A stretch of DNA of 64,000 nucleotides, taken from the NCBI GenBank assembly GCA_963514005.1, contig OY740804.1:19654001-19718000 (forward strand), in the 5' to 3' direction. Under the pieces are notes generated by a model. It was not told where the DNA came from and searched no databases. It saw only the letters and a list, made by a program, of their open reading frames with translations. The position numbers and the translations under genes are program-made. The stretch comes from Raja brachyura. Its lineage: Eukaryota. This document shows positions 1,560 to 59,500 of this stretch, piece by piece. Numbering within the stretch: the first letter of the stretch is position 1; the number at the start of each line of letters is the position of its first letter.

Positions 1560-4500
1560 ATATATTTTTAAATATTTTTATTTATTAGAGGTACAGTAAA
1601 TTAGATCAGTGTACATCCCGTATATATTATTACAATCATTGTACCCCTTAGTTTTTAAGGCTATTAAAAAAAGGAATCGAAACAGAGAAAGTGAGAGAGA
1701 ATTGTGAAAGTGAAGATGCGTGACGAAGGGAAAGAAGAGAGAACCCTTAGTCGAGGAGTTAGAGAAAGGAGATTAAGAGATAGACCCTAGAAAAATAGAG
1801 AGAGAAAGAAGAAAAAAGGAAAAGACAGATACTTTATTATAAACATCATGCAAAAGGAATTTACCAACTCGGCAATTTTGCATCCCCCTTTACCAAGACC
1901 TGACGCCGGTACATTTTTGAGGTACTCTTGCACCCTATCCTTATAGATCTATAAATGCAGGCCACGTCTTATAAAAGCAATCTGATTTTCCTGCCACTTG
2001 TAGTCTCATATCTTCCAGATGTAGTGTTTCAAACAGTTGAAATTCACATATTTACTGTTGGTATGGGAGCATTTTTCCAGAATTTTAAGATTAGCTTTTT
2101 TCCAGTTATTAACCCGTATTCAAATAGATTCTTTTGAAACACATTTAATTCAGGGCTACCTTCCGTTGTTCCAAGAAAAATCCATTCTGCTTTTGGTGTC
2201 AGTTTTATTTTAAATAATTTTTTGAAGATTTCAGAAATTTCACTCCAAAGGTTTTGAGTTTTTATACAAACGACAAATGAGTGCGCTATAGTAGCTTCTT
2301 GGGACTGGCATTTATCACAGATAGGTGAGGCGTTGGGAAAAAGTTTACTTATTTTAGTTTTTGAATAGTATAATCTATGTAATATTTTAAATTGTATTAA
2401 AGTGTGTCTTTCGTTAATTGAACATTTGCGCATATTTAAAAAGTATTCTTCCCACCTCTCTTTGGAAATTTTGATAGCTAATTCTTGTTCCCAGTCTCTT
2501 CTAATACCTTCAGTTGTTGGTATTTCTGCATTTAGAATATTATATATATATGATATTGTTTGCTGATTCAGCCTTTATCTTAATCGCTTCATCCAGTAGA
2601 TCTAATGGCATAATGTAATATTCTTGTACATATTTTTTCAGATAGTCACATATTTGAAAATATTTAAAATACTGATTGTTTCCCAAATTGTACTTTAGTT
2701 GTGGTTGTTTAAATGATAGTAATTTTCCCATTTCATACAAGTCTCCCAACATTTTAATCCCTGCTCTTTCCCATTGTATAAATGCTTTATCTATAATTCA
2801 GGGTTTAAACGAAGGGTTTTTAACTATAAGAGATAAGAGAGATAAATTTCTTAATTTTAAGTATTTTATTTGTTTCCAAGTTCCAATTGTACTATATATA
2901 ATTGGATTTTTGTTATAGTTTGTATTATTCAACTTCATTGGTGAGAGAAGGGTCGCTCCAATATTACAAGGGGAGCAGTCCTCTTTCTCCATAATAATCC
3001 AATCCAGTTGCTGGGCACAATTATCCAGCAGTTGAATCATATTTCTAATATTTACAGACCAACAGTAATACATAAAGTTAGGGAGTGCTAATCCCCCTAC
3101 TACTTTGGGTTTATTCAAGTTTATTCTTTGTATTCTATGGGACTTATAATCCCATATAAAATTTATAATGTCTGAATCCAGTTTAAAGAAAAACTTTTTT
3201 GGTAGGTATATTGGAATTGATTGGAACAGGTATAAAATTTGTGGTAGAAAAGTCATTTTATAGCATTTATTCGGCCTATTAAAGACATCTGAAGCGTTTT
3301 CCAGAATTTAATTAAATTATATAATTTCTTAAGTAAAGTATTATAATTTGCATTAAAGATATCTTGATATCTTCTAGTAATTTCAATGCTGAAGTATTTA
3401 AATTTTTCTATAGCTATTTTAAAAGGAAACTGTAAGAGATGTTTTGAATCTTTTGGTTTTATTGACATGATTTCGCTTTTGTTCCAATTTATTCTGTATC
3501 CTGAAAATGATCCAATATCCTCAATTAAATTTAATATATTTGGTATAGTGATATGAGTTTTGTGATGTACAGTAGTACATCATCAGCGTATAATGGTATT
3601 TTATTGTTTGAATATTTTGTATTGTAGCCATGGATATTCGGATGAGTTCTAATTCTTTCTGCTAGGGGTTCAATTATAAGAGCAAATAACAGCGGTGATA
3701 GTGAACATCCTTGTCTATTACCCCTTGACAATTGAAATTTCGTAGATAAAATGTTATTAGTTAATATTCTGGCCATTGGCTTATTATATAGTAATTTAAT
3801 CCATAGAATGAAATTCTCTCCCAGTTGGAATTTTTGCAATACTTTAACCATATAATTCCATTCCACCTGATCGAATGCTTTATCTGCATCCAACGAAATA
3901 ATTGATAATTCTTGATCTTCAATTTGGTGTGAATGCATTATGTTAAGCAGATGTCTTAAATTATTAAATGATTGTCTCTTAGGGATAAACCCCGTTTGAT
4001 CCGGATATATTAATTTACTAGCATACTTACTTAATCTTCTAGCTAATATTTTCGCTAATATTTTTGAATCTGTGTTTAACAACGCAATAGCTCTATATGA
4101 TCCGGGTTCTTCCACATCATTATCTTTCTTAAGTATTAATGTAATCGTTGATTCTGCTAGTGTTTCAGGTAGTATTTGTTCTTTAAAGGCATATGTATAC
4201 ATTTTCTGTAGGAGTGGTGTAAATATGTCGTAAAAACTTTTATAGAATTCATTACTAAATCCATCAGGACCTGGTGTTTTTCCATTCTTTAATGAGATTA
4301 TTGTTTCTTCTATTTCCTTATTTGTGATTTGTGCTCACAATTTCTCTTGTTCCTGCAACTCTAGTTTTGAAAGATTACAGTTATCCAAGAACTCTGTGAC
4401 TTTAATGGTGTCCGTTGTCGTTTTAGATGTATACAAATTCTCATAAAATTGCGCAAATCTTTTATTAATATAATTCAGTAAAGTTAATACTTCCCCTCTA

Positions 4501-5483
4501 TCTGATTTGATCTTTGAGATCATGTGTTCTTTTTCTCGATTTTCTTTTTTTATCCCCAAAATCAAAATGTTCCTGTCTTGTAATTTGGAATAATCTCATA
4601 ACTTTAGCTGATAATAATTTATTTAATTTAAATTTCAGTATTAATATTTTATTGTGTTTATCCATAGTTGGGTCTTTAGCATTATCTATATCCAGTTGTC
4701 TAATTTGTTCTTCTAACTGTCTTTGTTCGTTCTTGTTTTTTTTATTTTGAAAAGCTTGGTATGAAATTATAACACCTCTAATAAATGCTTTGAAAGACTC
4801 CCATAATAATGTAGGTGATATGTCTGGAGTGTCATTTATTTTGAAAAAGAGATCCATTTGCCGTTTTAAATATATACTCCCTTGCGGGTCTTTTAAAATT
4901 TGAGGGTTGTACCTCCAAAACGATTTATTCTTAGACATTCCTTCCAGTTTTAAAAATAAAGTTAGTGGGGAGTGATCTGAAATCATGTTGGGATGGTATT
5001 TTAGATTCAAAGTATACGGAATTAATTTTGTATCCACCAGGAAATAATCTACACGTGAACATGTCTTGTGTACCATTGAATAAAACGAGTATTCCCTGCC
5101 GGTCGGATTTGCAATTCTCCAAACATCTGTTATATTTGTTTTTATTTATGTATGTGTTTAAAAGTTCGCCAGTTTTAGATTTCGTATTACCTCACTGTTT
5201 TTGGCTAGATTTGTCTAGGTAAAGGTCTAAAACACAATTAAAGTCTCCACCTATTATGACATTTTGGTAATTATATTTGCGTTTGTATTCAAGATTTTAT
5301 TGAAACAATGCAGATTGTCAAAGTTGGGCGCATATATATTTACCAAGGTGGTTGGGGTAGCATGGATCTCACCGGTAACTATCAAATATCTCCCATCCTT
5401 ATCTGTTAAGGTAGTTTTTAGTTTAAATGGTATGCCTTTGTGAATAATAATTTACGTGCCTCTAGATTTCGACGTATATGACG
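1560..5483 (-). mobile_element. 5'-truncated L1-clade LINE (ORF2: partial APE endonuclease, RT, C-terminal Cys motif), degenerate
   Basis: Minus-strand ORFs SRVDYFL/ISDHSP (endonuclease), SYRAIALLNTDSKILAK..QTGF..RQGCSLSPLLF..YADD (RT) and CDKCQSQEATIAHSFVVC; A-rich 3' end near 1560; 16-bp TSD TATTTACAATATATAT at 1544-1559 and 5484-5499. Confidence 0.92.
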
Positions 5484-9745: not shown

Positions 9746-10607
9746 ATAAAGGGGATGCAATGGGGACATTCTTTACCCCGACTGTGGTAAGTACCTGGAT
9801 CACATTTTCGAAGAGTGATGAAAGCAGTCACCAGCAGAATTTAAGAAGTGTCTAATCGAGCACTTGTATCGCCCAGACACAGAAGGCTACGGGCCAACTC
9901 CTGGGAGATCGGATTAATAAGACACAGACAAAAAGATGCAAAGTGCTGGAGTAAGTCAGCAGGTCAGGCAGCATCTCTGGAGAACATAGATTGAAATGTG
10001 AAGCCAGAAGAAGGGAGATAGTTAGAACTAACCAATTTTAGGTAGTTAACCAACAACAACCCTTTTCTCTGTCCCAGTCCCTTGCCACCCATATCACTTC
10101 CTCTCACTCCAAATTGAATGTCTCTTCTCTCTGTATCGCAAAGCCTTTTGTCTTCCCATCTCTGGAATTTGTCCAACTATACGCCAATCAAAACTCCCTT
10201 ACCTGCATCCACCGATCACTTGCCACGCCCCATCCAGTTTCCACCCCCTACTATATACAACCCGAAATGTTACCCATTCCTTCTCTTCAGAGATGCTGCC
10301 TGTCTCACTGAGTTACTCCAGCATTTTGTGTCTGCCTTCAATTTCATCCAACATCTGCAGTTCTTTCTTAGACAAAATGTTACCTCTGTGTTCTTGAAAG
10401 GTGCTGCTTGACCCGTTGAGTTACTCCAGTACTTAGTGTACACTTTGGGGGATTCATAATGAGGTGCCCCCTAGTTGGCGTTGACATGATTGGCCAAATG
10501 CCCTGTATGACCAATGACTAATATTTAAATAAACCACTTTTTGTTCTTAAACGGTGGGGAATTACAAACTTCTCCAAATCAAACCCAATTCCCCCACTGA
10601 CACTTAC

Positions 10608-10892
10608 CAGGGGGTTCACAGATGTCCTTCAGCGGGATCACTGCTTCCTTCTTACTGATTGGGTTACTGGCCTCGCACTTGTACACAATGCCCGCATCCG
10701 CTCCACTGTGATGAATCTCTACCGTCTCACTGTTTCCCTGGAAGTAATGGATGCTGCCGTTTCCCAGAGGTTCACTGTTCTTCCACCAACTGAATCTGGT
10801 GGGGTTGCCAAAGGGCACGGAGCAGGTCAGGAGGAAGAAGTTGCAGATACTGGTGATGTTCTTTGCCTTGATATGTGTTTCTGATATGGGCG
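10608..10892 (-). CDS. Gene A exon: C2-type Ig domain of a CD2/SLAM-family receptor
   Basis: ccccAG acceptor, GTAAGT donor, 285 nt, phase 1-1; APISETHIK..CNFFLLTCSV..FSWWKN..YKCEASNPISK..DIC with the four-Cys pattern of the CD2/SLAM second domain. Confidence 0.88.
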
Positions 10893-11889
10893 CTGGGGTT
10901 GGAACGGAAATTAAAGATGAGTAAAAGAGATCCTTGTGGATCCAACTTTCCCCCTTCCAAAAATCCCTAACTTTTCCCCAACGCCAACAACCACGAGTGA
11001 ATTTCAAGCCGATCCCATTAATTTCCACCCACCAGTTTAACTCTTCCCCTCATCCCCACTCTCTTCCGTTCAGCCCATTGGCGCAGGAGGAAGTCCATAC
11101 ATATGCTACGCTTCCTTCCCGACCACTGCCCTCACTCATCAGCAATGTCATAAATATTCTCAGCCAATAAACTTGGCCACTGGTGGAGAGATTTCCAAAG
11201 ACACACCCCTCTAAGTAAATAAATTACTCCCCTTCTCTGTCCTGAAAGGCCAACCTTATTCTGAGAATGTAACCACTGATTCCAGGTATCCCAACTTACA
11301 TCTTACGTGCATGACTTGTCCATGTGGATGACAGTAAGGAGGAGCGCTCCAGGCTGCAGAGAGGTGGAGATGGGCTGGTCAGCTGAGTAGGGTTGTGGTA
11401 ATTAGAGTTTAATGGATGGAAGTATGAGGTGATACAATTGGAGAGTTGAAACGGGTCCAGGCAATAGGCAATAAATGGGAGGGTGGGAGTGTGGTGGAGG
11501 ACACAAGGAGCTGGAAGCAAAGATCCCTGATGGAGTTGGGATATCAACAAGGGTTAATCCGGCAGATAGGATGCTTTGCTTTCATTGAGATGGAAGTATA
11601 AGAGCAGGGAGAGAATGCTAGCGTCGTGCCCAACACTGAGGACAGTTCTAGTCACCACATCCCGGGAGGAACAGGCTTGTGTTGGAGGATACAGAGGGGA
11701 TTTATTAGGATTTTACAGACTGGGATATTATCGCTGTGCAGAATCATGGGAGAGACCAAGTTGTTTTCCCCGGAACAGAAGAGGCTGAGAGGAAGCGTTT
11801 GAGGGGTGTAAAATGATGAGAGGACTGGGCACAGTCAACAGGAAGGAGCGGGTTCCCTGAGCAGAGGGGCGGATGGACAGGAATCGGGG

Positions 11890-14736: not shown

Positions 14737-15054
14737 CGTACACTTCCAGTCGGACTCTTGCTAGAATTTCAGATCCTGAATTTGTTACAAAAATCACCTC
14801 GTAATCAGCAGTGTCTTCTATCCGTAGATCACGGATTTCCAGTTCATACCTCTCAAGATTAAAAGTTACCCGGTTTTTGTACTCCATAGTACCAAAGTAT
14901 TCAATGTTGTTCTTTGAGTATTCCGCTATCCTGATATTGGGTAACCGTTTCCACACCACCTCAGTAATATGTGGTCCAACAGCCATCCCAGTAGGTAACA
15001 AGACGTTTCGACCCACAGTTCCGATCACAGGACGAGGGTCAGCCCCAGTCCCAG
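14737..15054 (-). CDS. Gene A exon: cysteine-less IgV domain (CD2/SLAM type)
   Basis: ctcAG acceptor with upstream CTAAC branch point, GTGAGT donor, 318 nt, phase 1-1; AGTGADPRPVIGTVGRNVLLP..VVWKR..YKNRVTF..LEIRDLRIEDTADYEV..VRLEVY; B- and F-strand Cys are absent. Confidence 0.9.
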
Positions 15055-30318: not shown

Positions 30319-31254
30319 TCACAGGTTTGTTGTAAAACCTCTGGAATGTAGCTTCACTGTGGCGAGGATATGGTTCATGGGCACCTCCATGGTCATCGCC
30401 GCTGATGTGGATGCAGCCCTGGTAGAATGGGATTTAAAGATATTAATATCAATACCTGCTGCATCCAGCACCACCCTGAGCCACCAGGAGATCGTCTGCA
30501 CCGTCACCCTGTGATGGGGTTTCTTATGGCTGATCAGCAGGTTCTTCTCCATTCCCCTGAGGGTATGCGTCACTTTAATGTAGTGACGGATATGGGTGGC
30601 TAAGCAGAGCCTCACATCAGTGGGGTATGCCGGAAATATCAGCTGCAGCCCTGTGAACCCAGGTCTATGCTGCTTGAGTAACTCATCAATATAGAAGGTC
30701 ACTCTCTCAGGGGTAGAGACCATTTTATCCATATTAATGTTATGTAAGGTCTGAACCCGCTGAGCTGATGTTAGCGCCATCAACATAACCAATTTCAGGG
30801 TGAGTTTGTCCAGTGGAAGTCCAATCATAGGTGACCAAGTCCTGAGTAGGGTCAGCACCACCCCAATATCCCAGGTGACATTGTAACGTGGTTGGGGAGG
30901 GTTTGAATTGAAGATACCCCTCATTAATTTGGACACAAGCTGGTGTGATCCTACCCCTATGCAGAGGTAGGAGGACAGTGCGCTCCTGGCACTGTTGATG
31001 GCGCTGTAACTGAGGCATTCATCATGGTGCAGCCCTGCGAGAAATTCCAGCACATGTGGTATCGTGGCAGAGTCATACGAGATGTTAATCCGTGTGCAGT
31101 AGGCCTCCCATTTTCTGGTTTGTGTCAGATACTGCCGTCTGGTAGACTCTCTGCACGATGCTCCGATGGTGTTCATGGTCCTTGGTGTGATTCCGTATTG
31201 TAGCAGAGGTCTCTTCAAAACCTGCAGGCCAACAGGTTCAGATGACTGTGGCAC
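30319..31254 (-). pseudogene. DIRS tyrosine recombinase (frameshifted before the catalytic Tyr)
   Basis: SAINSARSALS, LTSAQRVQTL, KSHSTRAASTS; the final TFQRFYNKP motif lies in another frame. Confidence 0.88.
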
Positions 31255-32216
31255 GGATGGTATCCCCCTGTAGTGTGGTTAGTCACCAAATCTGGGTTCT
31301 TGTTAAAAAGTGCCCATGGTTCTTTAATCATCCCAAGGACCACCGAATACCATGGTTGTGTAGGCCAGTCGGGTATTATTAAAATACCTGTTGCAGAATC
31401 TGATTTAATTTTCCGCAACACCCGACTGATGAAGCAAAATGGAGGAAATGCATAGAAAAACCATTTCCCCCAGTTCAGCGAGAAAGCGTCCATCGCTATT
31501 GCCCCAGGATCTGGTTCCCAAGATACATATGTTGGTATCTGATGGTTCAACCTGGACGCAAAAAGGTCGATATCCGGTGTACCAAATTTGGTTGTGCTTT
31601 TTGTAAATATTTGGGGATTCAACATCCAATCAATGTTATCATTGAATACTCGTGACCTGGTGTCCGCCACTGTATTGAGCTTACCTGGAAGATAGGTAGC
31701 TGATATCCAAATATTTTGTTCTATGCACCAGAGCCAAATTGAATTTGCCAATTCATCACAAGATATTGACTTGATACCACCCATATGATTTAAATATGCC
31801 ACCACAGTGGTATTGTCTATTTGGAGACGGACATGCGTATCATAGAGGCTTGTACAATAAGCTCGTAGTCCGTGAAATACTCCTAGCATCTCCAAATAAT
31901 TTATCCCTTGTGATAATAGAAGGGTAGATTTATGTGAGTCCCATCTGCCGCCACAACTGGAAGTAGCGTTGGTAGCTCCCCAACCTTGGGCGCTTGCGTC
32001 AGTTTGTAAAACCACTGACGGGTAAGGCACAATGATGGGCTTGAATGAGTTACGAATATTATCAATCCACCATTGTAACTCAAATTTTGCCTTGATTGGC
32101 AGCTGCATAGGTCTGTCAAAATGCCCAGCATTCATTTTTATTGCTGAAATCTTTGTTCTTTGTAAATTTTGATAATGTGAAGGTCCAAATTGGGCAGCTG
32201 GAAATGTAGCTACCAA
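31215..32216 (-). pseudogene. DIRS RNase H + DNA N6-adenine methyltransferase-like domain
   Basis: LQTDASAQGWG, INYLEM, IDNTTVVAYLNHMGG, NTVADTRSR (RNase H); DIDLFASRLN, YAFPPF, PDWPTQPWY (MT domain). Confidence 0.88.
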
Positions 32217-32270
32217 TTTCCCAATTACCTTAGCAGCATGTCTGATTGTCGGTGCACTGGCGCAAACAAG

Positions 32271-32783
32271 TTAATTACATGCTCCAATGATATCCATAGC
32301 TTTGTTAGCTAGGATTGAAGCAATCAATTGATCGGTGTCAATCGTGAATCCCAGATAGTCCATAACCTGTGATGGGTAGAACTTAGATTTGTCTGGATGG
32401 ATTACAAACCCCATTTTTTGAAACAATGATGTAGTAGCTGTTACTGCTAAATTTGTTGATTCCATGGTATCTCCTACTATTAAGATGTCATCTAAATAGG
32501 CCAGAACTATATGGTTCTGTCTCCTCAGTGTTGCTAACACTGGTTTCAATAATTTGATAAATAATCTAGGGGCTGTAGTAAGCCCATTAGGCAGGGCTCT
32601 ATATTGCCACAGCTGCTCCATCCAAACAAACTTCAAGAACTTCCGGTGATGTTTCCGTATGGATACTGAATAGTATGCATCTTTTAAATCGATGCATGCC
32701 ATGAAGCAAACTCTAGAAAACAGTAATTTGGCTGTTTCATACGTGTCCATTTTAAAATGGGTATATTGCACAAAGGTTTTCAA
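32271..32783 (-). pseudogene. DIRS reverse transcriptase (fragmented)
   Basis: IDLKDAYYSV..LPNGLTTAPRLF..YLDDILIVG..YLGFTIDT. Confidence 0.9.
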
Positions 32784-33272
32784 ATGGATTAAATCAATAA
32801 TGATACGACATCCACCATCTTTTTTGGTTTTAGTAAAGATGTTGGATATGAACTCAAGGTTCGTGAATCGTTTTTTCTATCACCCCTTTTTCTTGTAGCC
32901 TCAAAATTTCAACATGTCCTTCCGCTATTTCCTTATGGGAAAGTGCAAATTTACGGTCTGGTACATGTTGAGGCGGGGAAGTTGTTCATTCATGAACTCA
33001 ATTTTGTACCCCTGAATACTTTGTAAAATAAACGAGTCTGAAGTGATAGAACTCCATGCATCCCCAAAAAAACGCAATCTCCCACCAATTTGCGAGGTTA
33101 CACATGCAAACCGTGCATGAGAACCAGACCGCCTTATCTCCATGGTTAGCTGCCGACCTGGACATATTTGGTGTTTCGCGGAGGTGCTGGATTTTGGGTT
33201 TGCCGCATCTTCCACGCCGGCCGCTGAGGGCCTTGCCCTAAAAAAGGCTTCTGTTGTTGTTGTGACCTCATG

Positions 33273-37023: not shown

Positions 37024-38569
37024 GTAAGATTTCTCCGTGCCTGAATTAACAAGTGCTTTGGATCTGGCCATTTTGGTCAGTATGGTCACCAACATTATCT
37101 GGTCTGTGTCATCGGGGGAAGTACAGCTGGAGAGGAAACAACTCCAGTTACTGGAGACAAGTAGCTGACAGCTAGTCCCAGAAGGGTGGTGGATATTGGA
37201 GGGAATGGAGTAGTGAGGTGTGGGGTGATTGGAGAGGTGCTGAGGGTGGCATTGGTGGGTGACTGGTGTAGGGGTGGGGGTCTGCGCTGTTCATGCTTCC
37301 TTCCCTTGGAAAGGAAAAGAAGGGAGTCTAGAATGGGTTTACAGTTTGGTTGCTGGGATGGTGGGATTATCATGCATTTGAGCCTCCAGAGGTTGTGTGG
37401 GCTCATCCCTGAGGTGAATCAGGGCAGAGATCACCTCTTTTTTGTTAATTGAGAAAATATATATTTTGTCAGGAATGTCCTGCTGAGGTAAATCATTCAT
37501 GGTCTCATTGTAGAGGGAGAGCAGGTATGAGGGGGCCAGGAGTCATGGATGGGGACTGGGGGTTGGGGTCCAGGGGTCAGGAAGCAGTTTGGGGTTGTGT
37601 TGGTTGGAAACAAAGTTTTGTTCCACCACACTGCTTTCCTTTCTGCTTATATAGACACAAGGAACTGCAGGTGTTAAATTACAAAAAAAGAGACAAATTG
37701 CAGGAGTAACAGCAGGTCAGGCAGCATCTCTGGAGGACATGGACAGGCAACATTTCGGGCCATCTATCCATATTCTCCAGAGATGCTGCCTAACCATTGA
37801 GTTACTCCAGCACTTTGTGTCTTTTCTTTTCCGCGTGTTAATTTCCAAAGTGGTTTTATGTGGTTCCTTGGTTCCTGATGGAAATGGCGTTGTAACCAAT
37901 TTTGGCCAGTGTAATATAATAAGCGTTCCGTCATTCATCAGTTCATGTTATTTAAAGACACACTGTAGCAGAACTATCGATATTCTTATTGGTGGTTGAG
38001 GTGGGTAAAAATCAGTTGTTCCTTTTGCATAAACACTTCTCGCATCGGCTGCCAAACAATCAGCATTGTGGCTTTCTGTGTGTGATCACAGCGCCTCCAG
38101 CCTGGACCTCTGTCGCACTTTGTGTCTTTACATTCTTGTTACATGAGCAGACTGCTCACAACGTGTACCCACTGGAAGAGAGCACCTCGCCGAGCCCTCT
38201 ATCTCAACAGACCATTCCCGGAGAGAGATGCACGCTGAGCAACTGCTACTCTGTACCTGGGTGATTCTCCGCATCTCAGTCCGTGAGTTCTTTTCTAAGC
38301 AAATCTTTGTGTTTCACTTTCCTCTATCTGGCGTCTTTATTAAGTTCATAACTGGTATAATCCTGGACTCCACCCACCCAAGGCAGAGAAAATATGAGTT
38401 AGATACAGTGAAGTTCCGTCTAGACTGTCCCGTCACATATACCCAGGGCATGGGTTAACTGCAGAGTAAATCTCTCTCAACACCGTCCCCTCACACACTC
38501 CCAGAGCCCAGATTAGACACAGTGAAACTCCTTCCATAGCGTCCCCACACACTCCCAGGGCACAGGTTG

Positions 38570-52246: not shown

Positions 52247-53529
52247 GAGAGAGAGAGAGAGAGAGAGAGTCTGAACTGTAACTCTATTTCCACATGTCCA
52301 CATGGAAGTTAACATCCAATAACAGCTGCTCCTAACTTACACTCTCTAGCTCTTGCTTAATAATATTGTAATCTACTTTATCCCAATGTAGTACCTTTCC
52401 CCAAAGTCCAGACATCCTTATTCATAACTATCTTAAGACCCATGAAGTTGCGATCACTGCTCCAAAATGCTCTCCCACTGAATCACTAGTCTCCTGGCCA
52501 GACCCGTTTCCCAATACAAGGTCTAATATGACAACAAATTATAGATCGATGAGATGTAGTCACATGAATATAGTAAAGCCTTTGATAAGGTTCTGCGCTA
52601 CGATAAAGTATGTGGGATCCAAAGCAAATTGGATCCAAAGTTGGCTTGGTGGGAGGAGACAGAGGGTAACATTTATGATTGGAAGTCTAGCCTATGGTAA
52701 GTGGTGACCCACAGTGATTGGTGCTGGGATCCTTACTGCGTAGCATATACATTAATGATCTTAATATGAATATAATAAGTATGATTAGTAAGTTTGCAAA
52801 TAACATGGACATTCGTGGAATTTTTAACAATAAGGAGAAAGTCGCAGGCTACGGAATGATATTGATTGCCTGGAAATTGGGTGGACAAATAGATTGAAGG
52901 AGAGAATGAAGATGTTGGGATTGTTTTCCTTGAAACAGAGGCTGAGGGGGATGTTCACAATTATGCCCATATAGATATGGTGGATAGTGAGGAACCTCAT
53001 CCCATTACACAGATGTCTAAAATCTGACAGCATAGGTTTCAGGTGAGGAGTGAGAAAGTTAGCAGAGACATCAGGGTTTCTCTTCCATATGGGTTAATCA
53101 GTGAAGGGTATAATCTGGGGCAGTTGAAGAGAATACAGTGGTGGTTGATGGCTGGTACAGACTCAATGGGCTGACGGGCCTGTTTCTCTGATTGTAATCC
53201 CAGCTGGGTTGGAGTCAGATCAGTCTGGATTCCTCCCACTACTGAGGCTTGTTGATGCTTTCACTTGACATATTCCAGGCTGAATGACATCCTCCGGCCT
53301 ATCCATCGATATCTGGCTGGAGCTGTAACTTCCTTCCTCAGACCTGGGCGCAGAATCTTCACTCTGTTCCCCCCGTGAGCTCACTGTGTGATGGAACTGG
53401 GGTCTCTAACAGAGCCGGGAGCCAGACGATGGGCCGCATGGCCTGCTCCTGTGCTCTGTGATTCTCCCAGCTCCGATTCCTCCTCCAGTCGCTGAGCTCT
53501 CCTGCTGACTGCCTCTCTTGTCTCCTCAG

Positions 53530-53847
53530 CAGGGACTGGGGCCGCCACTGGCACCGTGACTGGAGCTCGGGGACACTCGGTCTCCTTGCCTGCTGGGATC
53601 CCAGTCGCACGGGACAATGCAGGGGTTGAGTGGAGGCGGACATCACCCAGAACCAAGATAGCGAAGTACTCGAATGAGAATATTGAATACTATGTCACCA
53701 ATTACACGGGACGGGTAACACTTCACCGCGGGAACTTCAGTCTGGAAATCCGAGATCTACGGAGAGAGGACGCTGGTGATTACGAGATCGTTGTTATTAC
53801 AAGGTCAGGAACGGAAATTCCGGCAAGAGTCCAACTGGAGGTGTACG
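53530..53847 (+). CDS. Gene B exon: cysteine-less IgV domain (CD2/SLAM type)
   Basis: ctcAG acceptor, GTGAGT donor, 318 nt, phase 1-1; AGTGAATGTVTGARGHSVSLP..VEWRR..YTGRVTL..LEIRDLRREDAGDYEI..VQLEVY. Confidence 0.9.
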
Positions 53848-54699
53848 GTGAGTATGACTGCCGCGGACATCCCGGCTTCCTCCGCCTACTGAGCCCCCTA
53901 ATTAATGGGTGAGGGCAAATCCTGCGTGTACCCCAATTTACTGAACCCCACTGACTGCCAGTGTACAGAGTGGGGGTCACAGCACAAGTGTAGTGGGACT
54001 GGGGCAGTGCCAGGCTGGGGGACAGACCTACCACATCCCCGGAGACTGGGCCAGGGGCCGCAAGGGATCGAACCATCAACGGGGAACCTCGTAGCTCCGA
54101 GGCTGGAAGAGCTGAACACATGGGAGGGAAGGGGGGGACTGATCTGACCCTGGCCTCGGCTCCGCTTTCCTGCTTGTTCCCCTCAATCCTTGACTTCCTT
54201 CCTGACCCAAACTCCATCTCAGCTTTGAATATATACATTCAATGACTCAGTCTCTACTGCTCTCTTGGGAGAGAATTCCAAAGAATCCCCACCCTCGGGA
54301 AGCAGAAAGAATCATAAGTGCACCCTTGCCTCCCCATCACCGGAATGCACCTGTTTCTTTCTCCTCTGTGTGGTGATCCAGCTCCCCTTAAATCCCTCAG
54401 TTAGATTCAGTGCAGCAACTCCCTGTGGGAACAAGTACCACATTCCCACTACTCTAAGCATTTTCTCCACATATTAGACCAAGCTGGCCAAGTCCTGAAG
54501 GACAGAACAGCCAGACTGGGTCAGTGACAGGGAGTGAGTGAGCCAAGACCAGGGACAAATCGACCTGACCTGGTCCTCCCCAGTCCAGCTGCGGCAGGTC
54601 CCTGATACCACTGGTGATAGATACCAGTCAGTGTACAGATATCCCCCTGAGAGAGAGTGGCTATAAGACACCAGTCAATGTACAGATATCCAGTCAATG

Positions 54700-55250
54700 T
54701 ACAGATGAGCTGGTCAGAACGCTTTTGGAGTATTGTGAACAATTTTGTGCCCCATATCTGAGAAAAGATGTGCTGGCGCTGGAGAGGGTCCACAAGAGGT
54801 TTACGTGAATGATCCCAGGTATGAGTGGGTTAGCATATGATGAGCGTTTGACAACACTGGGCCACTACTTGCTGGAGTTTGAAGGATGAGGGGACACTTC
54901 ATTGAAACTTATTGAATAGTAAAAGGCTTCGATAGAGTGGATGTGGAGAGAACGTTTCCATTAGTGGGAGAGTCTAGGAGCAGAGATTATAGTCTCAGAA
55001 TAAAAAGACGTTCCTTTGGGAAGGAGTTGAGGAGGAATTTGGTAAATCTGTGGAATTAATTGCTACAGACAGCTGTGGAGGCCGTCAATGGATGTTTTTA
55101 AGGCAGAGATCGATAGATTCCTGATGGGCACGGCAGTCTGGGGTTACAGTATGGGGAGAAGGCAGGAGAATGGGATTGGGAGGGAGAGATAGATCAGGCA
55201 TGATTGAATGGTGAAGTAGATGATGGGCTGAATAGCCTAATACTGCTCCT
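54700..55250 (+). mobile_element. CR1 3' fragment (intronic)
   Basis: LVRTLLEYCEQFCAPYLRKDVLALERV and CR1 3' UTR. Confidence 0.75.
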
Positions 55251-56019
55251 TATGAACTTCCCCCTGAGATACAGGGACTGAGAGACACTAGTCAGTGTAC
55301 AGATATCCCTCTGAGGGATTGAGAGACAGATGTAAAAATAGAGATATGCCCGTTTGAGCGAGGGACTACCATAAACCAATATGTGAACAGTGATGAAACC
55401 TCTGAGAGACTGACACATGCAAGTCAGTATGCAGATATTCCACCGAAAAATCAAGAGATATATTGGTGTATTGTTCTTTCCCAGCCAGTTTCTCAGCATG
55501 TTTACCAACACTTGTCCACACTGGAGCAATCCTCCCCTTGGGAAAACAGTTGATATCCCCTCCCCCAAAGATGACACACCTTCTGCTATCGCTAGAGCTC
55601 AAGAGAGTGGCCACCTCTCAAAATAAGTTGTGGGTATCATGCTGGGAATGGGGGAAGTGCATGTACACTAAGTGCAATGGCACAGTGTCCGGAAGCAGAG
55701 AGGTGGAGCAAGTGGCCAGGCATAAGTTCCTGGACCTTCAAGACTCTGGCTAGAATTTTGGGACAACAAAGTAGCCAGCCTATTAGAAACAGAACTGAGG
55801 TGACATGTGACCCGGCTCTCCACTCCAGTCGCCTCGTGAGTTCTTCCAGAACGGTCTGGGTTGCCCAATCCTTGGACTGAGCGTTTGCAAATCCTGTAGA
55901 AAGACCCCCTGCTGACATTGTTGTTGCGGCTGGCTGTGGTGATCTTCATGTCAAGAATACTTTAACTCCTGTGAAGAAGCAGCAGAAATGCTCATCGCCT
56001 TCCTCTCCGTCAATAGTCC

Positions 56020-56250
56020 AGTGAGTGGTGAGTCTATGGAATTCTCTGCCACAGAAGGTAGTTGAGGCCAGTTCATTGGCTATATTTAAGATTAGATGTG
56101 GCCCTTGTGGCTAAAGGGATCAGGGGGTATGGAGAGAAGGCAGGTACAGGATACTGAGTTGAATGATCAGCCATGATCATAATGATTGGCGGTGCAGGCT
56201 TGAAGGGCCGAATGGCCTACTCCTGCACCTATTTTCTATGTTTCTATGAA
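56020..56250 (+). mobile_element. CR1 3' tip (intronic)
   Basis: CR1 3' UTR ending TTTCTATGTTTCTATG. Confidence 0.8.
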
Positions 56251-57642
56251 ACCCTTGAAGCAGCGCTGCTCAATTGGAGTCACGTCTGCGTCCCTCTCCA
56301 TATTTGTGAGGGTGCTGCAGACAGACAGACCCGCAAACAGTGTCCATTCCAAACAGCAATCAATGCACAGCTGGACCTTGTTGCAGCCATTCCTGCCTTT
56401 TCCAGGGACACCTGGATTCCTCCATGGAGATGTGGGATTACCAGACAGGGGGCACAAAGCTGTCCACAGTCTCACTGCAGCTTGATCTGAATTATTTCCC
56501 ATGCCCCACACTGAATCCTCGTCCTCCTGCTGGCTGTCAATGCAAGAAGTTGGCATGCCCACCCCACAATGTACCACAAGGACATGGGCTGCACAGGCCT
56601 CTCCCACCTCCAACAGGATTCCTGGGATCGAGGGGGAGATGAGGGCATCTGCAGCATTGGGATAGGACCCCTTCCTGAACTGTGGGACAGGACCCCTCCC
56701 TAATACAATGTCTCAGGAGCTCTCCTTGAACAATCGAACAGGAGCCCTCCCTACAGCAATGGGACTGGACCCCTTACTGAACAATGAGACAGGACCCCTC
56801 CCTGCTAGTCCCAGCTCCAACATGACCATTCCCTAGCGCAGATGTCAATCAGGACCAGGGGTTATGTGGGCAAGTTCCCCACAGCATGTCTGCTGTGAGA
56901 AGTCAGCTTAAATGTGAAATGTAAATTTGCAGCCTCATTCACAGTTACAAAGTGAATGCTGCAAAACTCACAAAGTGCTGGAGTAGCTCAGCAGGTCAGA
57001 AAACATCTCTGAAGAATTTTGAAAAGTGAAGTTTTGGGTCGGGATTTCTTTAGTGTCAGCAGTTCCTTGTGTCAAAAATGTGAGGGAGCTGGACCAACAT
57101 CAGTGGAGATACAGTCAGTGGCACAGGGTGCTGGGGAAGATGGGTAACTTGAGGGCCAATGTTGCATTTATCAACGTTCAGGCTCAGTAACTTCTCAGAA
57201 TATCCCTTCACTAATACAATTTATTTTATTCCTCAGTAACGCTGGCCACTGTATCTCCAGTATTTCTGGACTTTTTTTGTGCCTTTCTTTGTGAAATTAG
57301 ACATAGAATTTTTGTTAATTCTTTTCCTTAATTTCCATTGTAGATTCTGCCAAATCCATCTGTCAACACCATGGTTGTGGTTATCTATAGAAGATCAATT
57401 GAGTAGATGTGATGGGTATTGGAGGAGAGGGAATGGAGAGGAGAGATTTGAGGGGACTGAGGAGTACAATGTGGGGAGGGGATGGAAGACAATGATATGT
57501 TAATTGGGTTGGACTGAGGCAAGGCATTGGGATGACAGAGGTTTCCCAGCCTGAGGCTGGATGAGATGGATCCTCTAATCCTATGTCACTGGGAGTGAGA
57601 GGATGGGATTAGTCACGAAAACTGTTCTCATGCCTGTTACAG

Positions 57643-57861
57643 ATCCAAATGGAATAATAACATCAGCAACAACCAATATTACGACAGCACCCAACACAAC
57701 GACAGCACCCAATACAACGACAGCAAACGTGTCTCAGAGAGTGATCCTGCTGATCAATCTGTCGATTCTGGGAACCCTCCTGATCTCTGTTCCCGCCGTG
57801 ATTCTCTGTCTTGTGTGGAGAAGAAGAGCCACAGGAAGGGAAGTGTCTTCAGGCTCTGAAG
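57643..57861 (+). CDS. Gene B exon: Thr-rich glycosylated stalk + transmembrane helix + basic juxtamembrane segment
   Basis: ttacAG acceptor, GTGAGT donor, 219 nt, phase 1-1; DPNGIITSATTNITTAPNTTTAPNTTTANVSQR-VILLINLSILGTLLISVPAVILCLVW-RRR. Confidence 0.88.
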
Positions 57862-58019
57862 GTGAGTGGATCTGACACCCAGTCTGAGTCTGTGGGTTGG
57901 GGGAGTGGGGGATGGGTAGGAATGGTGATGTCGGAGGAATGGAGGGAAGGGGCAGATGGGGTACAGAGTGGGCAAGGGTTTCAGTACTGACCTTGTCACC
58001 TCTCTTCTCTGTCCCTCAG

Positions 58020-58108
58020 GCCCAGCTGAGACTGAAATCGATTATGCAGATCTTCAGTGGATGCAGAACCATCGCACTGCCCAGACACTGCCGGAGGGAA
58101 ACAAGAGG
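58020..58108 (+). CDS. Gene B cytoplasmic exon with ITIM (IDYADL)
   Basis: Strong pyrimidine tract + cAG, GTAACG donor, phase 1-0; GPAETEIDYADLQWMQNHRTAQTLPEGNKR. Confidence 0.82.
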
Positions 58109-58801
58109 GTAACGGCCGACACTTTACACTGGGGGGGGGGGGCAGTGGGACCCCACTATACCCGGGTCAGACAGTACACAAGGCCCCACATGTGAACTAT
58201 TCAGTCCCAGAATCAGCCCGAGGTCCCCGTCACAACCCACTGCTGTTGACCTGATGACCACTGGGCACAGCAAGATCCACATAATTACCCAGTTCAATCA
58301 TTACCTCAGTGACCATCTTGTTCGCTCTGATAGACGTAACACGAATTGGACGCCCCACACCCACTCTCTCCAGTACGCCTCCCTCTCTCTACCGTACACT
58401 CCCCACTCTCCTCTGTACACTCCTCTCTCTCCTCTGTACATTTCCCATGCCCACTCTCCTTGATGATTTCAGAGACATTTGCAACAGAGATTCTGCAGGC
58501 CTCCTGCCCCAAGACAGGGCTTCTCCAGCAGGTCACAGACCAGCATGAAGCAGAAGAGAAAGCACGCGTCCTCCCCATCATTGTCTATCTTCACAATTCA
58601 GGCAATCACAGCCCCGTGGTACACTGTCCCCCACACACTCAGTTACTGGGGTACACTATCCCCCACACACCATTGCAGGGTAAGTGTCTGAAGTCTGAGG
58701 GCCGGTGCTAACTCAATGACCGAGCTCCTGTCTCTGAGCTGCCTTGCTTTGTCTTGCTGATCTGTCCCAGTGTGGCACTAACTGGTTTGTTTTTGTTGTA
58801 G

Positions 58802-58858
58802 TTTGTCAGGGGTGAGATTGCCTCCACTGAGTATGCGGCGGTGGAGTACCGTGCCTGA
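58802..58858 (+). CDS. Gene B terminal coding exon with ITSM (TEYAAV)
   Basis: CACTAAC branch point, T-rich tract, tAG acceptor, phase 0; FVRGEIASTEYAAVEYRA*; several AATAAA at ~59410-59470. Confidence 0.8.
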   Translation, partial: FVRGEIASTEYAAVEYRA

Positions 58859-59500
58859 CCCCTCAATGGATCGGCTGGGCATGGAGCCCATGGACATGAT
58901 CCCGCGGTGTACGCCAGACCCACCGCGCTGCACGTCGAGGGACATAGACAGCGGCTCGTCTGGGCTTGAGTCACAGCTGCTCTGGAGGGTGGGAGGCGCC
59001 GTGGGCCCAGTATAGGATCTTTGGTATGTCAAACTGGGCTGGTGGGACCTGGGGCAATGCTGGTCAATGGGGGGGGGAGGGGGGGGTTGAGAGGTGCTAT
59101 TGACCCAATTGACTGGGGCAACGCTTTTTGCTGGGGGTGGGGGGGGGTGGGGGCTGAGCAGTTGAAGAGCCGGATGGTTGATAAGAAGAAGCAGTTGTTA
59201 AACACGGAGATAACATTTTTTAGTCTCCTGTACCTACTTCCTATGGTAAGAGTGGGATTAAAGTGTCACCACAGAAATGTGGGTCTTTTATGATATTATT
59301 TACTTTATTGAGGCAGTGCTTGATATAAATGTCTTCATTCATCGAGAAACTGACATTTTCTTGGAGACCCCTTCTGGAGAATCTCCAATATGTTTTAACA
59401 TAAAGATAACAATAAAAGATTAACTACAGTTTCAATGCCACACAAATAAAACAATAAACTATGCAATAAACTATTAAGTATAGTTCCAATGGCTACAATT

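Follow-up and report, generated by a model that had tools for sequence, protein, structure and literature searches.

The window analysed here, 64,000 nucleotides of the Raja brachyura contig OY740804.1, contains a gene (gene B) whose exons encode one immunoglobulin V domain, a stalk, a transmembrane helix (TM) and a tail bearing an ITIM followed by an ITSM. The original prediction took this layout for a PD-1-like checkpoint receptor, possibly made by grafting a duplicated V exon onto a different signalling module. The locus thus raises the question of whether gene B was assembled from unrelated parts, or is a member of a known family that has lost a domain. Our analysis favors the latter: with a probability of roughly 0.6, gene B is an intact-looking five-exon receptor of the SLAM/CD2 family that lost its C2 exon and kept the family tail, and would serve as a leukocyte surface co-receptor.

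The four phase-compatible exons that had been described on the plus strand (IgV, stalk plus TM, IDYADL, and TEYAAV with the stop) do translate as stated, and the count of coding exons becomes five once an upstream leader of the family type is included. The features of gene B are as follows:

38228..38282, + strand: leader (signal peptide) exon; 18 codons plus 1 base, donor TCC/GTGAGT, phase-1 join to the V exon
53530..53847, + strand: IgV exon, CD2/SLAM type; phase 1/1, 105 in-frame codons, 0 Cys, one N-x-T sequon
57643..57861, + strand: exon for stalk, TM and juxtamembrane segment; phase 1/1, placed by translation and the family HMM
57681..57725, + strand: 18-nt tandem repeat in the stalk, 2.5 copies (TRF: period 18, 96% matches, score 83)
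58020..58108, + strand: cytoplasmic exon 1 (cyt1); phase 1/0, ITIM IDYADL, donor AGG/GTAACG
58802..58858, + strand: cytoplasmic exon 2 (cyt2); ITSM TEYAAV, then a TGA stop
59411..59470, + strand: candidate polyadenylation site, four clustered AATAAA signals from a pattern scan, about 0.55–0.6 kb past the stop

All eight splice sites are canonical (donors GTGAGT three times and GTAACG once), with a strong pyrimidine tract at every acceptor. Since phase-1/1 exons join in frame in any combination, frame compatibility alone is weak evidence. The gene B searches were run exon by exon: the family exon HMMs, applied to the six-frame translation of the window, gave one match each, at the gene B exons and in family order, with E-values of 1.4e-20 (TM), 1.1e-13 (cyt1) and 2e-4 (cyt2). 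Together with the Pfam V-set match of the V exon (E = 7e-12), these single matches place the predicted exon set far beyond chance.

For the leader we scored all candidate ORFs globally, tblastn with short leader peptides being too insensitive. Among 1039 candidate ATG-to-phase-1-donor ORFs on both strands, compared with family leader peptides, the one at 38228-38282 ranked second, with a score of 38 over a background of at most 25; the top-ranked candidate was the leader of the neighboring paralogue, gene A. We infer that the second-ranked leader belongs to gene B, because it is the sole family-type leader upstream on the plus strand and no other V exon lies between. The two exons are separated by a 15.2 kb intron 1, rich in transposable elements, and the 8.5 kb immediately upstream of the V exon yielded no convincing leader. 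An in-frame hydrophobic stretch just 5′ of the V acceptor was rejected as a leader, being a stop-closed translation of the polypyrimidine tract.

Gene A, which has both V and C2 domains, lies head-to-head with gene B, the leaders being 18.6 kb apart, an arrangement in keeping with the clustered location of SLAM/CD2 genes. Its features, and the block that it shares with gene B, are:

19569-19518, − strand: leader exon of gene A, the top-ranked leader candidate
14738..15052, − strand: V exon of gene A (tblastn)
about 10899-10615, − strand: C2 exon of gene A (tblastn; family C2 HMM match at 10582-11049, E = 2.5e-34)
53298..54136, no strand assigned: block homologous to the gene A V-exon region (15269-14469, − strand; blastn, 74% over 847 nt)

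Judging from its tblastn identity to the skate proteins P0199 and P0196 (84-87% in V, 75-85% in C2), gene A belongs to another subfamily, as an orthologue of skate 'HEPACAM-like/Ly-9-like' proteins. Its TM/tail exons were looked for in the window and none was found.

By sequence and by modeled fold alike, the V domain of gene B is of the CD2/SLAM type, as originally proposed. The Pfam profile Receptor_2B4 scored 22.1 bits against a cutoff of 21, and the best solved relatives in the PDB, aligned over the full domain, were SLAMF5, CD2, CD48 and SLAMF6, although identity to solved mammalian domains is only 20-30%. For an AF2 model (pLDDT 88.7), the top Foldseek matches were CD2, CD48, CD84 and 2B4, with TM-scores of 0.77-0.84. 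A complex prediction with two copies of the domain scored 0.03, a value that speaks neither for nor against homophilic binding. The canonical B–F disulfide is absent, as is typical of SLAM/CD2-type V domains.

That absence would also be expected if gene B were a CEACAM-family gene, with a Cys-free N domain and a CEACAM1-type ITIM/ITSM tail, rather than a SLAM/CD2 receptor. CEACAM N domains are likewise disulfide-free V domains, those of CEACAM6/8 appear among the Foldseek matches (rank 33), and CEACAM genes have been reported down to cartilaginous fish, single-IgV CEACAM1-like genes being known (PMC13278318). In the fold search, however, CD2 and SLAM outrank the CEACAM N domains, and the CEACAM sequence matches are confined to a 30-residue stretch that is not part of the N domain in the chains concerned, whereas the SLAM/CD2 proteins rank first with full-domain alignments. 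Receptor_2B4 exceeds its cutoff, and the NCBI names of the relatives are SLAM-, CD48- or Ly-9-like. Consequently, we rejected CEACAM membership, which we regard as very unlikely. The C2 domains of gene B paralogues have four conserved cysteines, which we take to be the CD2/SLAM C2 pattern.

No C2 exon lies between the V and TM exons (53848-57642), as had been claimed: no family C2 HMM hit there is better than E = 17, and tblastn and blastn for an exon or a remnant returned only noise. In the whole window, the only match to this HMM is the minus-strand C2 exon of gene A. Gene B, as read from its exons, is a C2-less variant of the SLAM/CD2 family and not a canonical member, since it is missing the membrane-proximal C2 domain of the V-C2 ectodomain, which gene A and most relatives have.

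Could the real gene be V+C2, its C2 exon lost by assembly error or sited outside the V-to-TM interval? The V domains of other skates that are nearest to that of gene B (P0009 and P0186, 75-77% identical) do sit in V+C2 models, and the V–TM intron contains high-copy repeats at which contigs built from short reads break. Yet the window contains no N bases, and C2 signal occurs nowhere in it outside gene A. Short-read contigs that two studies produced independently also cover every unique part of the intron, differing by 0-0.8%; the joints listed, a minority of all, are repeat-to-repeat, although no one contig reaches from the V to the TM exon. An artefact of this kind is thus highly improbable.

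The part of gene B downstream of the V exon resembles other members of the same family. Its stalk is Thr-rich, 32 residues long and carries four N-glycosylation sequons, the tandem repeat duplicating a six-residue unit, TTAPNT, with an N-T-T sequon; it is followed by an uncharged TM helix and an RRR stop-transfer sequence. All three of these exons (stalk/TM, cyt1, cyt2) match V+C2 proteins exon by exon, with equal borders, in blastp and tblastn searches and with exon HMMs. Identity is 48-55% for the stalk/TM exon against its counterpart in batoid proteins of both V+C2 and V-only types, 48-57% for cyt1 against P0167, P0151 and P0154, and 59-65% for cyt2 against P0157, P0167 and P0154. This homology places gene B in a batoid SLAM-like subfamily with an RRR-ITIM/ITSM-PPxGN-TEYAAV tail, its nearest relatives being batoid RefSeq proteins (rays, sawfish) named SLAM family member 5/8/9-like, CD48-like or Ly-9-like.

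The signalling portion is consequently not the different module that had been supposed, but the standard tail of the family, found behind V+C2 in many paralogues (P0167, P0157, P0152, P0151, P0014). Nor does the ITIM+ITSM pair set gene B apart from V+C2 types, as had been thought, because several V+C2 relatives carry it too. Motif pairs among these relatives include IIYTDL + TEYAAV in P0167 and TVYADL + TEYAAV in P0157; the first motif alternates between ITIM and ITSM across relatives via the pY-2 residue (I or T), and the distal one is TEYAAV in most proteins with this tail and TVYAAV in those of Mobula.

The idea of a chimera, in which a duplicated CD2-family V exon was grafted onto an unrelated stalk/signalling module to give a PD-1-like checkpoint, drew on the resemblance of the motif pair to the PD-1 consensus and on how short the stretch of DNA homologous to gene A is, about 0.84 kb surrounding the V exon. 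The extent of that homology (given as ~0.8 kb) is borne out by blastn, but its shortness is explained by gene A belonging to another subfamily, with its TM/tail exons outside the window. The homology of all three downstream exons (stalk/TM, cyt1, cyt2) to those of same-family V+C2 members in four genera refutes grafting onto a foreign module; moreover, the V domain is without the Cys pair conserved in PD-1, and the thorny skate has a PD-1 of its own (XP_032887962; PMC12151841). We find such a chimera barely credible. Within the homologous block, the flanking introns are 83-87% identical and the V exon 70%; flank identity is 90-97% across 53385-53534, and its maximum, 97%, falls in a 60-nt window immediately 5′ of the acceptor.

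A simpler origin than grafting would be an ancestor of the V-C2-TM-tail type that dropped its C2 exon: with every Ig and TM exon in phase 1/1, the reading frame would outlast the loss. Comparable losses appear to have been repeated in batoids. The V-stalk-TM-two-tyrosine-tail layout also occurs, as automatic RefSeq models, in three rays: P0019 (Mobula; XP_072133953), P0154 (Hemitrygon) and P0155 (Hypanus), with first motifs TVYANI, IVYADI (an ITIM, as in gene B) and TVYADI, respectively. P0154 and P0155 are 76-79% identical to P0019 over their full length, and a single Hemitrygon gene has both a C2-less isoform (P0016) and one that includes C2 (P0210). In the phylogeny, which was built on the V domain, gene B falls inside a skate-only clade of V+C2 proteins (SH-aLRT 96), its V domain being 56-59% identical to those of V-only ray models. 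On the V tree, an AU test rejected the grouping of the four V-only receptors that have this tail into one clade (p = 1.7e-8), and at least 10 changes of state between V-only and C2-bearing are required.

The SLAM/CD2 family is greatly expanded in skates and rays. The expansion is visible in RefSeq, and we found no literature on it: no paper on the V-only ray models, and nothing relevant on the SLAM family in sharks, elasmobranchs or cartilaginous fish. The evidence supports assignment of gene B to this batoid expansion, with no 1:1 mammalian orthologue; to that extent the receptor is lineage-specific, as predicted, though its layout is not unique. More generally, the V type, the missing C2, the motifs and the lineage-specific expansion survive from the original interpretation, and the foreign module and the unique layout do not.

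Gene B might nevertheless be a relic, produced when a deletion or unequal crossover in a tandem array put a V exon beside TM/tail exons, which would still be open only because the event was recent and phase-1/1 exons stay in frame. None of the sequencing runs found to hold the stretch is on record as RNA, and no identical or orthologous protein was found in annotated collections, including those of three skates (Amblyraja, Leucoraja, Rhinoraja). Besides the long, transposon-filled intron 1, the C-terminus could be read in the same way: gene B has a TGA where relatives have Arg, so that ~18 residues kept in rays and sawfish are missing, and the frame past the stop still resembles ray C-termini. 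The truncation, however, falls after the ITSM. In contigs of a second organism label, about 0.8% divergent, coding changes comprise 4 nonsynonymous and 2 synonymous (n = 6, too few to be decisive), exons are no better conserved than introns, and exon 2 is more variable than introns; yet the ORF is intact there, with both tyrosine motifs and the TM helix kept. Five open exons with wholly canonical splice sites, and the conservation of the C2-less layout as full-length genes in three ray genera, also speak against decay, and we consider a relic unlikely, if worth bearing in mind.

If gene B is instead an intact receptor, it would engage a ligand of the SLAM/CD2 family in trans through its V domain, with the glycosylated stalk standing in for C2 as a spacer. 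Phosphorylation of IDYADL and TEYAAV by a Src kinase would then recruit SHP-2/SHP-1 via their tandem SH2 domains; the ITSM may also recruit SAP-type adaptors, and the net output would be inhibitory or switchable. The proximal ITIM and distal ITSM of the original prediction are present, their tyrosines 32 residues apart, the last exon holding the TxYxx(V/I) motif. The N-SH2 domain of SHP-2 prefers (I/L/V)-x-pY-(T/V/A)-x-(I/V/L), its C-SH2 domain prefers T at −2, A at +1 and I/V at +3, and both favor an aromatic residue at +5 (PMC12151841); in gene B the +5 residue is W in the ITIM and Y in the ITSM. The fit to these preferences supports a predicted recruitment of SHP-2.

For this one locus the result is mostly corrective, pointing to an ordinary family member rather than a new kind of checkpoint. 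To our knowledge, a V-C2 unit is common to all SLAM/CD2 receptors described so far; a gene that encodes V alone together with a complete inhibitory tail would mean that at least one vertebrate lineage can do without C2. With V-only, V-C2 and V-V-V forms and charged-TM partners, the family offers a natural series on what C2 contributes (e.g., spacing or cis-interactions), and the batoid expansion could inform the evolution of paired and checkpoint-type receptors by exon loss. Much more tentatively, C2-less SLAM receptors on mucin-like stalks might form a functional batoid class, generated repeatedly and comprising inhibitory (ITIM+ITSM) and activating (charged-TM) members. Gene B would then be a skate SHP-2-recruiting checkpoint convergent with PD-1, its ligand-binding V part driven to diverge while the flanking introns stay near-identical between paralogues. 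We hold this wider scheme to be possible but doubtful.

Among known systems, the mammalian SLAM receptors (SLAMF1 and 3-7, CD84/SLAMF5 being the best solved match) and CD2/CD48 share with gene B a Cys-free CD2-type V domain, the TxYxxV ITSM, an uncharged TM, a cluster of paralogues, and the exon plan L-V-(C2)-TM-cyt with phase-1 Ig exons. Gene B differs in having its V domain on a glycosylated stalk in place of C2, an ITIM rather than a second ITSM next to the membrane, and no 1:1 orthology that we could find.

The closest counterparts are the automatic ray predictions XP_072133953 (Mobula birostris 'CD48 antigen-like'), P0154 (Hemitrygon akajei, uncharacterized protein) and P0155 (Hypanus sabinus LOC132381253). 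These have the same succession of leader, V, Ser/Thr stalk, TM, (I/T)VYA(D/N)I and TEYAAV (TVYAAV in Mobula), with matching exon borders, and P0154 has the same ITIM+ITSM pair. In contrast, the V domain of gene B belongs to another, skate-specific clade, and its tail is shorter.

CEACAM1 and the single-N-domain CEACAMs have a disulfide-free V-type N domain, an ITIM/ITSM tail, rapid evolution and Ig-loss variants in common with gene B, but sequence and profile searches favor SLAM/CD2. PD-1 (CD279) likewise has one IgV on a stalk, a TM, and a tail in which the ITIM is proximal and the ITSM distal. The gene B motifs are near the PD-1 consensus, (I/V)(D/E)YG(E/V)L and (T/V)EYATI (PMC12151841), including the aromatic at pY+5, and gene B may therefore act similarly, through SHP-2. 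This layout, however, is common to many other families and so does not define membership of PD-1/CD28, which we rejected for gene B. PD-1 keeps C54, W67 and C123 from sharks to humans (PMC12151841), whereas in gene B the V domain has no Cys54-Cys123 pair and resembles CD2/SLAM rather than CD28/PD-1, PD-1 not being among its best sequence or fold matches. The tail being homologous to those of SLAM-like paralogues, the likeness in layout to PD-1 is convergent.

Translation of the four stretches that the original prediction had assigned to gene B agreed exactly with their description (the first four rows below), and the window contains no N.

53530–53847, plus strand: V exon, phase 1/1, 105 in-frame codons without a single cysteine (translation)
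57643–57861, plus strand: stalk/TM exon, phase 1/1, encoding a Thr-rich stalk, the TM segment and an RRR stop-transfer sequence (translation)
58020–58108, plus strand: first cytoplasmic exon (cyt1), phase 1/0, encoding IDYADL (translation)
58802–58858, plus strand: second cytoplasmic exon (cyt2), phase 0, encoding TEYAAV, then TGA (translation)
0.55–0.6 kb 3' of the stop, plus strand: four AATAAA polyadenylation-type signals (pattern scan)

The stalk carries four N-x-S/T sequons (translation of 57643–57861) and the translated TM segment is an uncharged hydrophobic helix of 23–25 residues. Three donors read GTGAGT and one GTAACG, with a strong pyrimidine tract before each acceptor. The V exon (53530–53847) matched Pfam V-set with E = 7e-12. 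All gene B searches were made exon by exon: HMMs built from the corresponding segments of homologous proteins, run against the six-frame translation of the 64-kb window, gave one match each, at the gene B exons and in family order (TM, 1.4e-20; cyt1, 1.1e-13; cyt2, 2e-4). The exon set is beyond chance.

The gene B model as originally drawn had no signal peptide, and no convincing leader was found within 8.5 kb upstream of the V exon; a hydrophobic in-frame stretch just 5' of the V acceptor was rejected, being a translated polypyrimidine tract closed by a stop. When all 1039 ORFs lying between an ATG and a phase-1 GT on either strand of the window were scored against family leader peptides, two outliers emerged (scores 45 and 38), the remainder scoring 25 or less.

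38228–38282, plus strand: leader assigned to gene B, score 38, donor GTGAGT
19569–19518, minus strand: leader of gene A (the neighbouring V+C2 paralogue), score 45, top of the scan

The leader at 38228–38282 follows the family pattern M-x3-QLL...W...ISVP in a phase that fits the V exon. Because there is no other V exon between it and 53530, we infer that it is joined to the gene B V exon; intron 1 would then span 15.2 kb.

An IgC2 exon had been reported missing between 53848 and 57642, and every search bore this out. A C2 HMM based on ten proteins of the family reached a best E of only 17 in that interval, its sole match in the window being the gene A C2 exon (10582–11049, minus strand, E = 2.5e-34); tblastn of the window with sixteen homologues, as well as tblastn and blastn limited to the V–TM intron, returned noise only. 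The unique parts of this intron are covered by short-read contigs from four runs in two studies, with differences of 0–0.8%. High-copy repeats interrupt these short-read contigs, so that none of them bridges the V and TM exons; among the contig joints listed for the intron, all are repeat-to-repeat. The repeats, at 54679–55269, 55861–56254 and 56846–57042, have very high copy numbers (summed contig depth up to millions), are probably SINE-like, and recur at some ten further sites in the window.

The V domain was correctly described as CD2-type. It scored above the gathering cutoff of Pfam Receptor_2B4, its best solved relatives by sequence were SLAMF5, CD2, CD48 and SLAMF6, all in full-domain alignments, and the best structural matches of its AF2 model (pLDDT 88.7) were CD2, CD48, CD84 and 2B4. 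At 53555–53783, run X1, the best match to the window, also contained a second V-exon contig that showed 16 differences over 229 nt (depth 6.5 versus 10 for the exact one), a sign either of a paralogous V exon (~93% identical) at another genomic site or of a strongly divergent allele.

A full HMMER scan that took the V exon as query gave 344 proteins. The close relatives were RefSeq models of skates, rays and a sawfish, named SLAM family member 5/8/9-like, CD48 antigen-like, Ly-9-like or uncharacterized, and the nearest V domains (75–77% identity) belonged to two skates, Amblyraja radiata and Rhinoraja longicauda, which places the window in a skate. A domain census by exon HMMs recovered V-C2-TM-tail, V-V-C2, V-V-V, V-C2-V and V-only forms, as well as short-tailed forms whose TM helix contains an arginine, the activating type; this batoid SLAM-like family is unusually modular. 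Literature searches on the elasmobranch SLAM family turned up no paper; the C2-less variant is already in RefSeq as automatic models.

The gene B layout, with matching exon borders, recurs in three orthologous ray proteins, P0019 (Mobula), P0154 (Hemitrygon) and P0155 (Hypanus), with 76–79% full-length identity to P0019; P0154 carries IVYADI and TEYAAV, the same ITIM+ITSM pair as gene B. Two further Hemitrygon proteins, P0016 and P0210, are isoforms of one gene whose sole difference is the C2 exon. Many batoid members, among them P0016, P0205, P0206, P0208 and P0210, have a short tail without tyrosine and an arginine in the TM helix (...GCWLRAT...), P0016 combining this with a V-only ectodomain. 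A tyrosine-free short tail together with a TM arginine is the hallmark of activating partners in paired receptors.

The proposal that a V exon had been grafted onto a different signalling module did not survive comparison with these relatives. The stalk/TM, cyt1 and cyt2 exons each match the corresponding segment in V+C2 family members, to which they are homologous: 55% identity over 62 residues between the stalk/TM exon and the sawfish protein P0151, 57% between cyt1 and P0167 of Hypanus (which has IIYTDL, then TEYAAV), and 65% between cyt2 and P0157 of sawfish. Across the relatives the first tail motif changes only at pY-2 and pY+3 (IIYTDL, IVYADI, TVYADI, TVYANI, TDYEIV), and the distal one is TEYAAV in most and TVYAAV in the Mobula proteins. 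The ITIM+ITSM pair is therefore one state of a family-wide tail rather than an import, and grafting is refuted.

The V-domain tree grouped gene B with skate proteins only (SH-aLRT 96), all of these V+C2, and placed the ray V-only proteins among V+C2 paralogues of their own species. The AU test (p = 1.7e-8) rejected monophyly of the four V-only receptors that carry a gene B-type tail, a group named after the tree was seen, and at least 10 changes between V-only and C2-bearing states were required on the tree. These patterns suggest either repeated C2 loss or V-exon exchange among paralogues, both of which are ordinary in tandem immune-receptor arrays and, as the exons are phase 1/1, would be frame-neutral.

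The limited homology with gene A, about 0.8 kb, was confirmed in extent (53298–54136, 74% DNA identity) but not as a sign of grafting, because gene A is orthologous to another subfamily, the skate genes named 'hepatocyte cell adhesion molecule-like / Ly-9-like' (Leucoraja XP_055510656, Amblyraja XP_032898518; 84–87% V identity).

15052–14738, minus strand: V exon of gene A
about 10899–10615, minus strand: C2 exon of gene A

An HMM search found no gene A TM exon in the window; the open frame past C2 runs into the intron, as in several truncated RefSeq models. Long retroelement ORFs lie on the minus strand at 2047–5145, downstream of this C2 exon (LINE-type endonuclease/reverse transcriptase), and at 30322–32876 (a second element, ORFs of 200–350 residues).

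When 53298–54136 was compared with 15269–14469 (minus strand), the introns flanking the two V exons proved closer than the V exons themselves. The flanks are 83–87% identical, rising to 90–97% across 53385–53534, with a maximum of 97% in a 60-nt window immediately 5' of the acceptor; the V exons are 70% identical (57–72% in the 5' two-thirds), with dS 0.58, about three times the intron divergence, and dN/dS 0.6. The pattern resembles homogenised introns or exchanged V exons, in either case with the part that binds ligand diversifying.

We put the probability that gene B is functional at about 0.6. All its exons are open, its splice sites canonical and its motifs intact, and contigs under a second organism label, ~0.8% divergent, also keep the ORF intact. 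That gene B is instead a relic seems to us unlikely, though several observations lean that way. None of the sequencing runs with the gene B stretch is recorded as RNA, an annotated orthologue appeared in none of three skate proteomes, and exon 2 has five of the six changes relative to the second organism (four nonsynonymous, two synonymous). Moreover, the TGA cuts off ~18 residues conserved in rays and sawfish; at 58856–58909 the frame runs 17 codons past it (PLNGSAGHGAHGHDPAV) and still resembles the conserved ray/sawfish C-terminus (RPPPGSAGEGARRQRPAV), so that the stop looks like a derived truncation. Separately, read-through of the cyt1 donor (58109–58150) gives ...KRVTADTLHWGGG, much as the sawfish isoforms P0151 and P0004 end (...KRVTTDTLPQGGG), and may represent a conserved alternative ending without the ITSM.

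If gene B is functional, its product would be expected, judging from its motifs, to act as a co-receptor of inhibitory or switchable type that would bind a family ligand in trans through its V domain. The uncharged TM helix argues against pairing with an ITAM adaptor. TxYxxV is the SAP/EAT-2 motif of SLAM receptors, and the two motif tyrosines are 32 residues apart, a spacing compatible with bidentate tandem-SH2 binding. IDYADLQW fits the preference of the SHP-2 N-SH2 domain and TEYAAVEY that of the C-SH2 domain. The former favors (I/L/V)-x-pY-(T/V/A)-x-(I/V/L) with an aromatic residue at +5, the latter T at -2, A at +1, V/I at +3 and an aromatic residue at +5. PMC12151841, which summarises both preferences, also reports that sharks and humans share conserved SH2 sites in SHP-1 and SHP-2.

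Gene B is like PD-1 in layout, as the original prediction emphasized. However, PD-1 has a Cys pair from sharks to humans that gene B lacks, and the thorny skate has a PD-1 of its own (PMC12151841); we therefore rejected gene B as a PD-1 relative. The closest known system is the SLAM/CD2 family, and as gene B departs from its V–C2 arrangement, we file it there as a C2-less variant.
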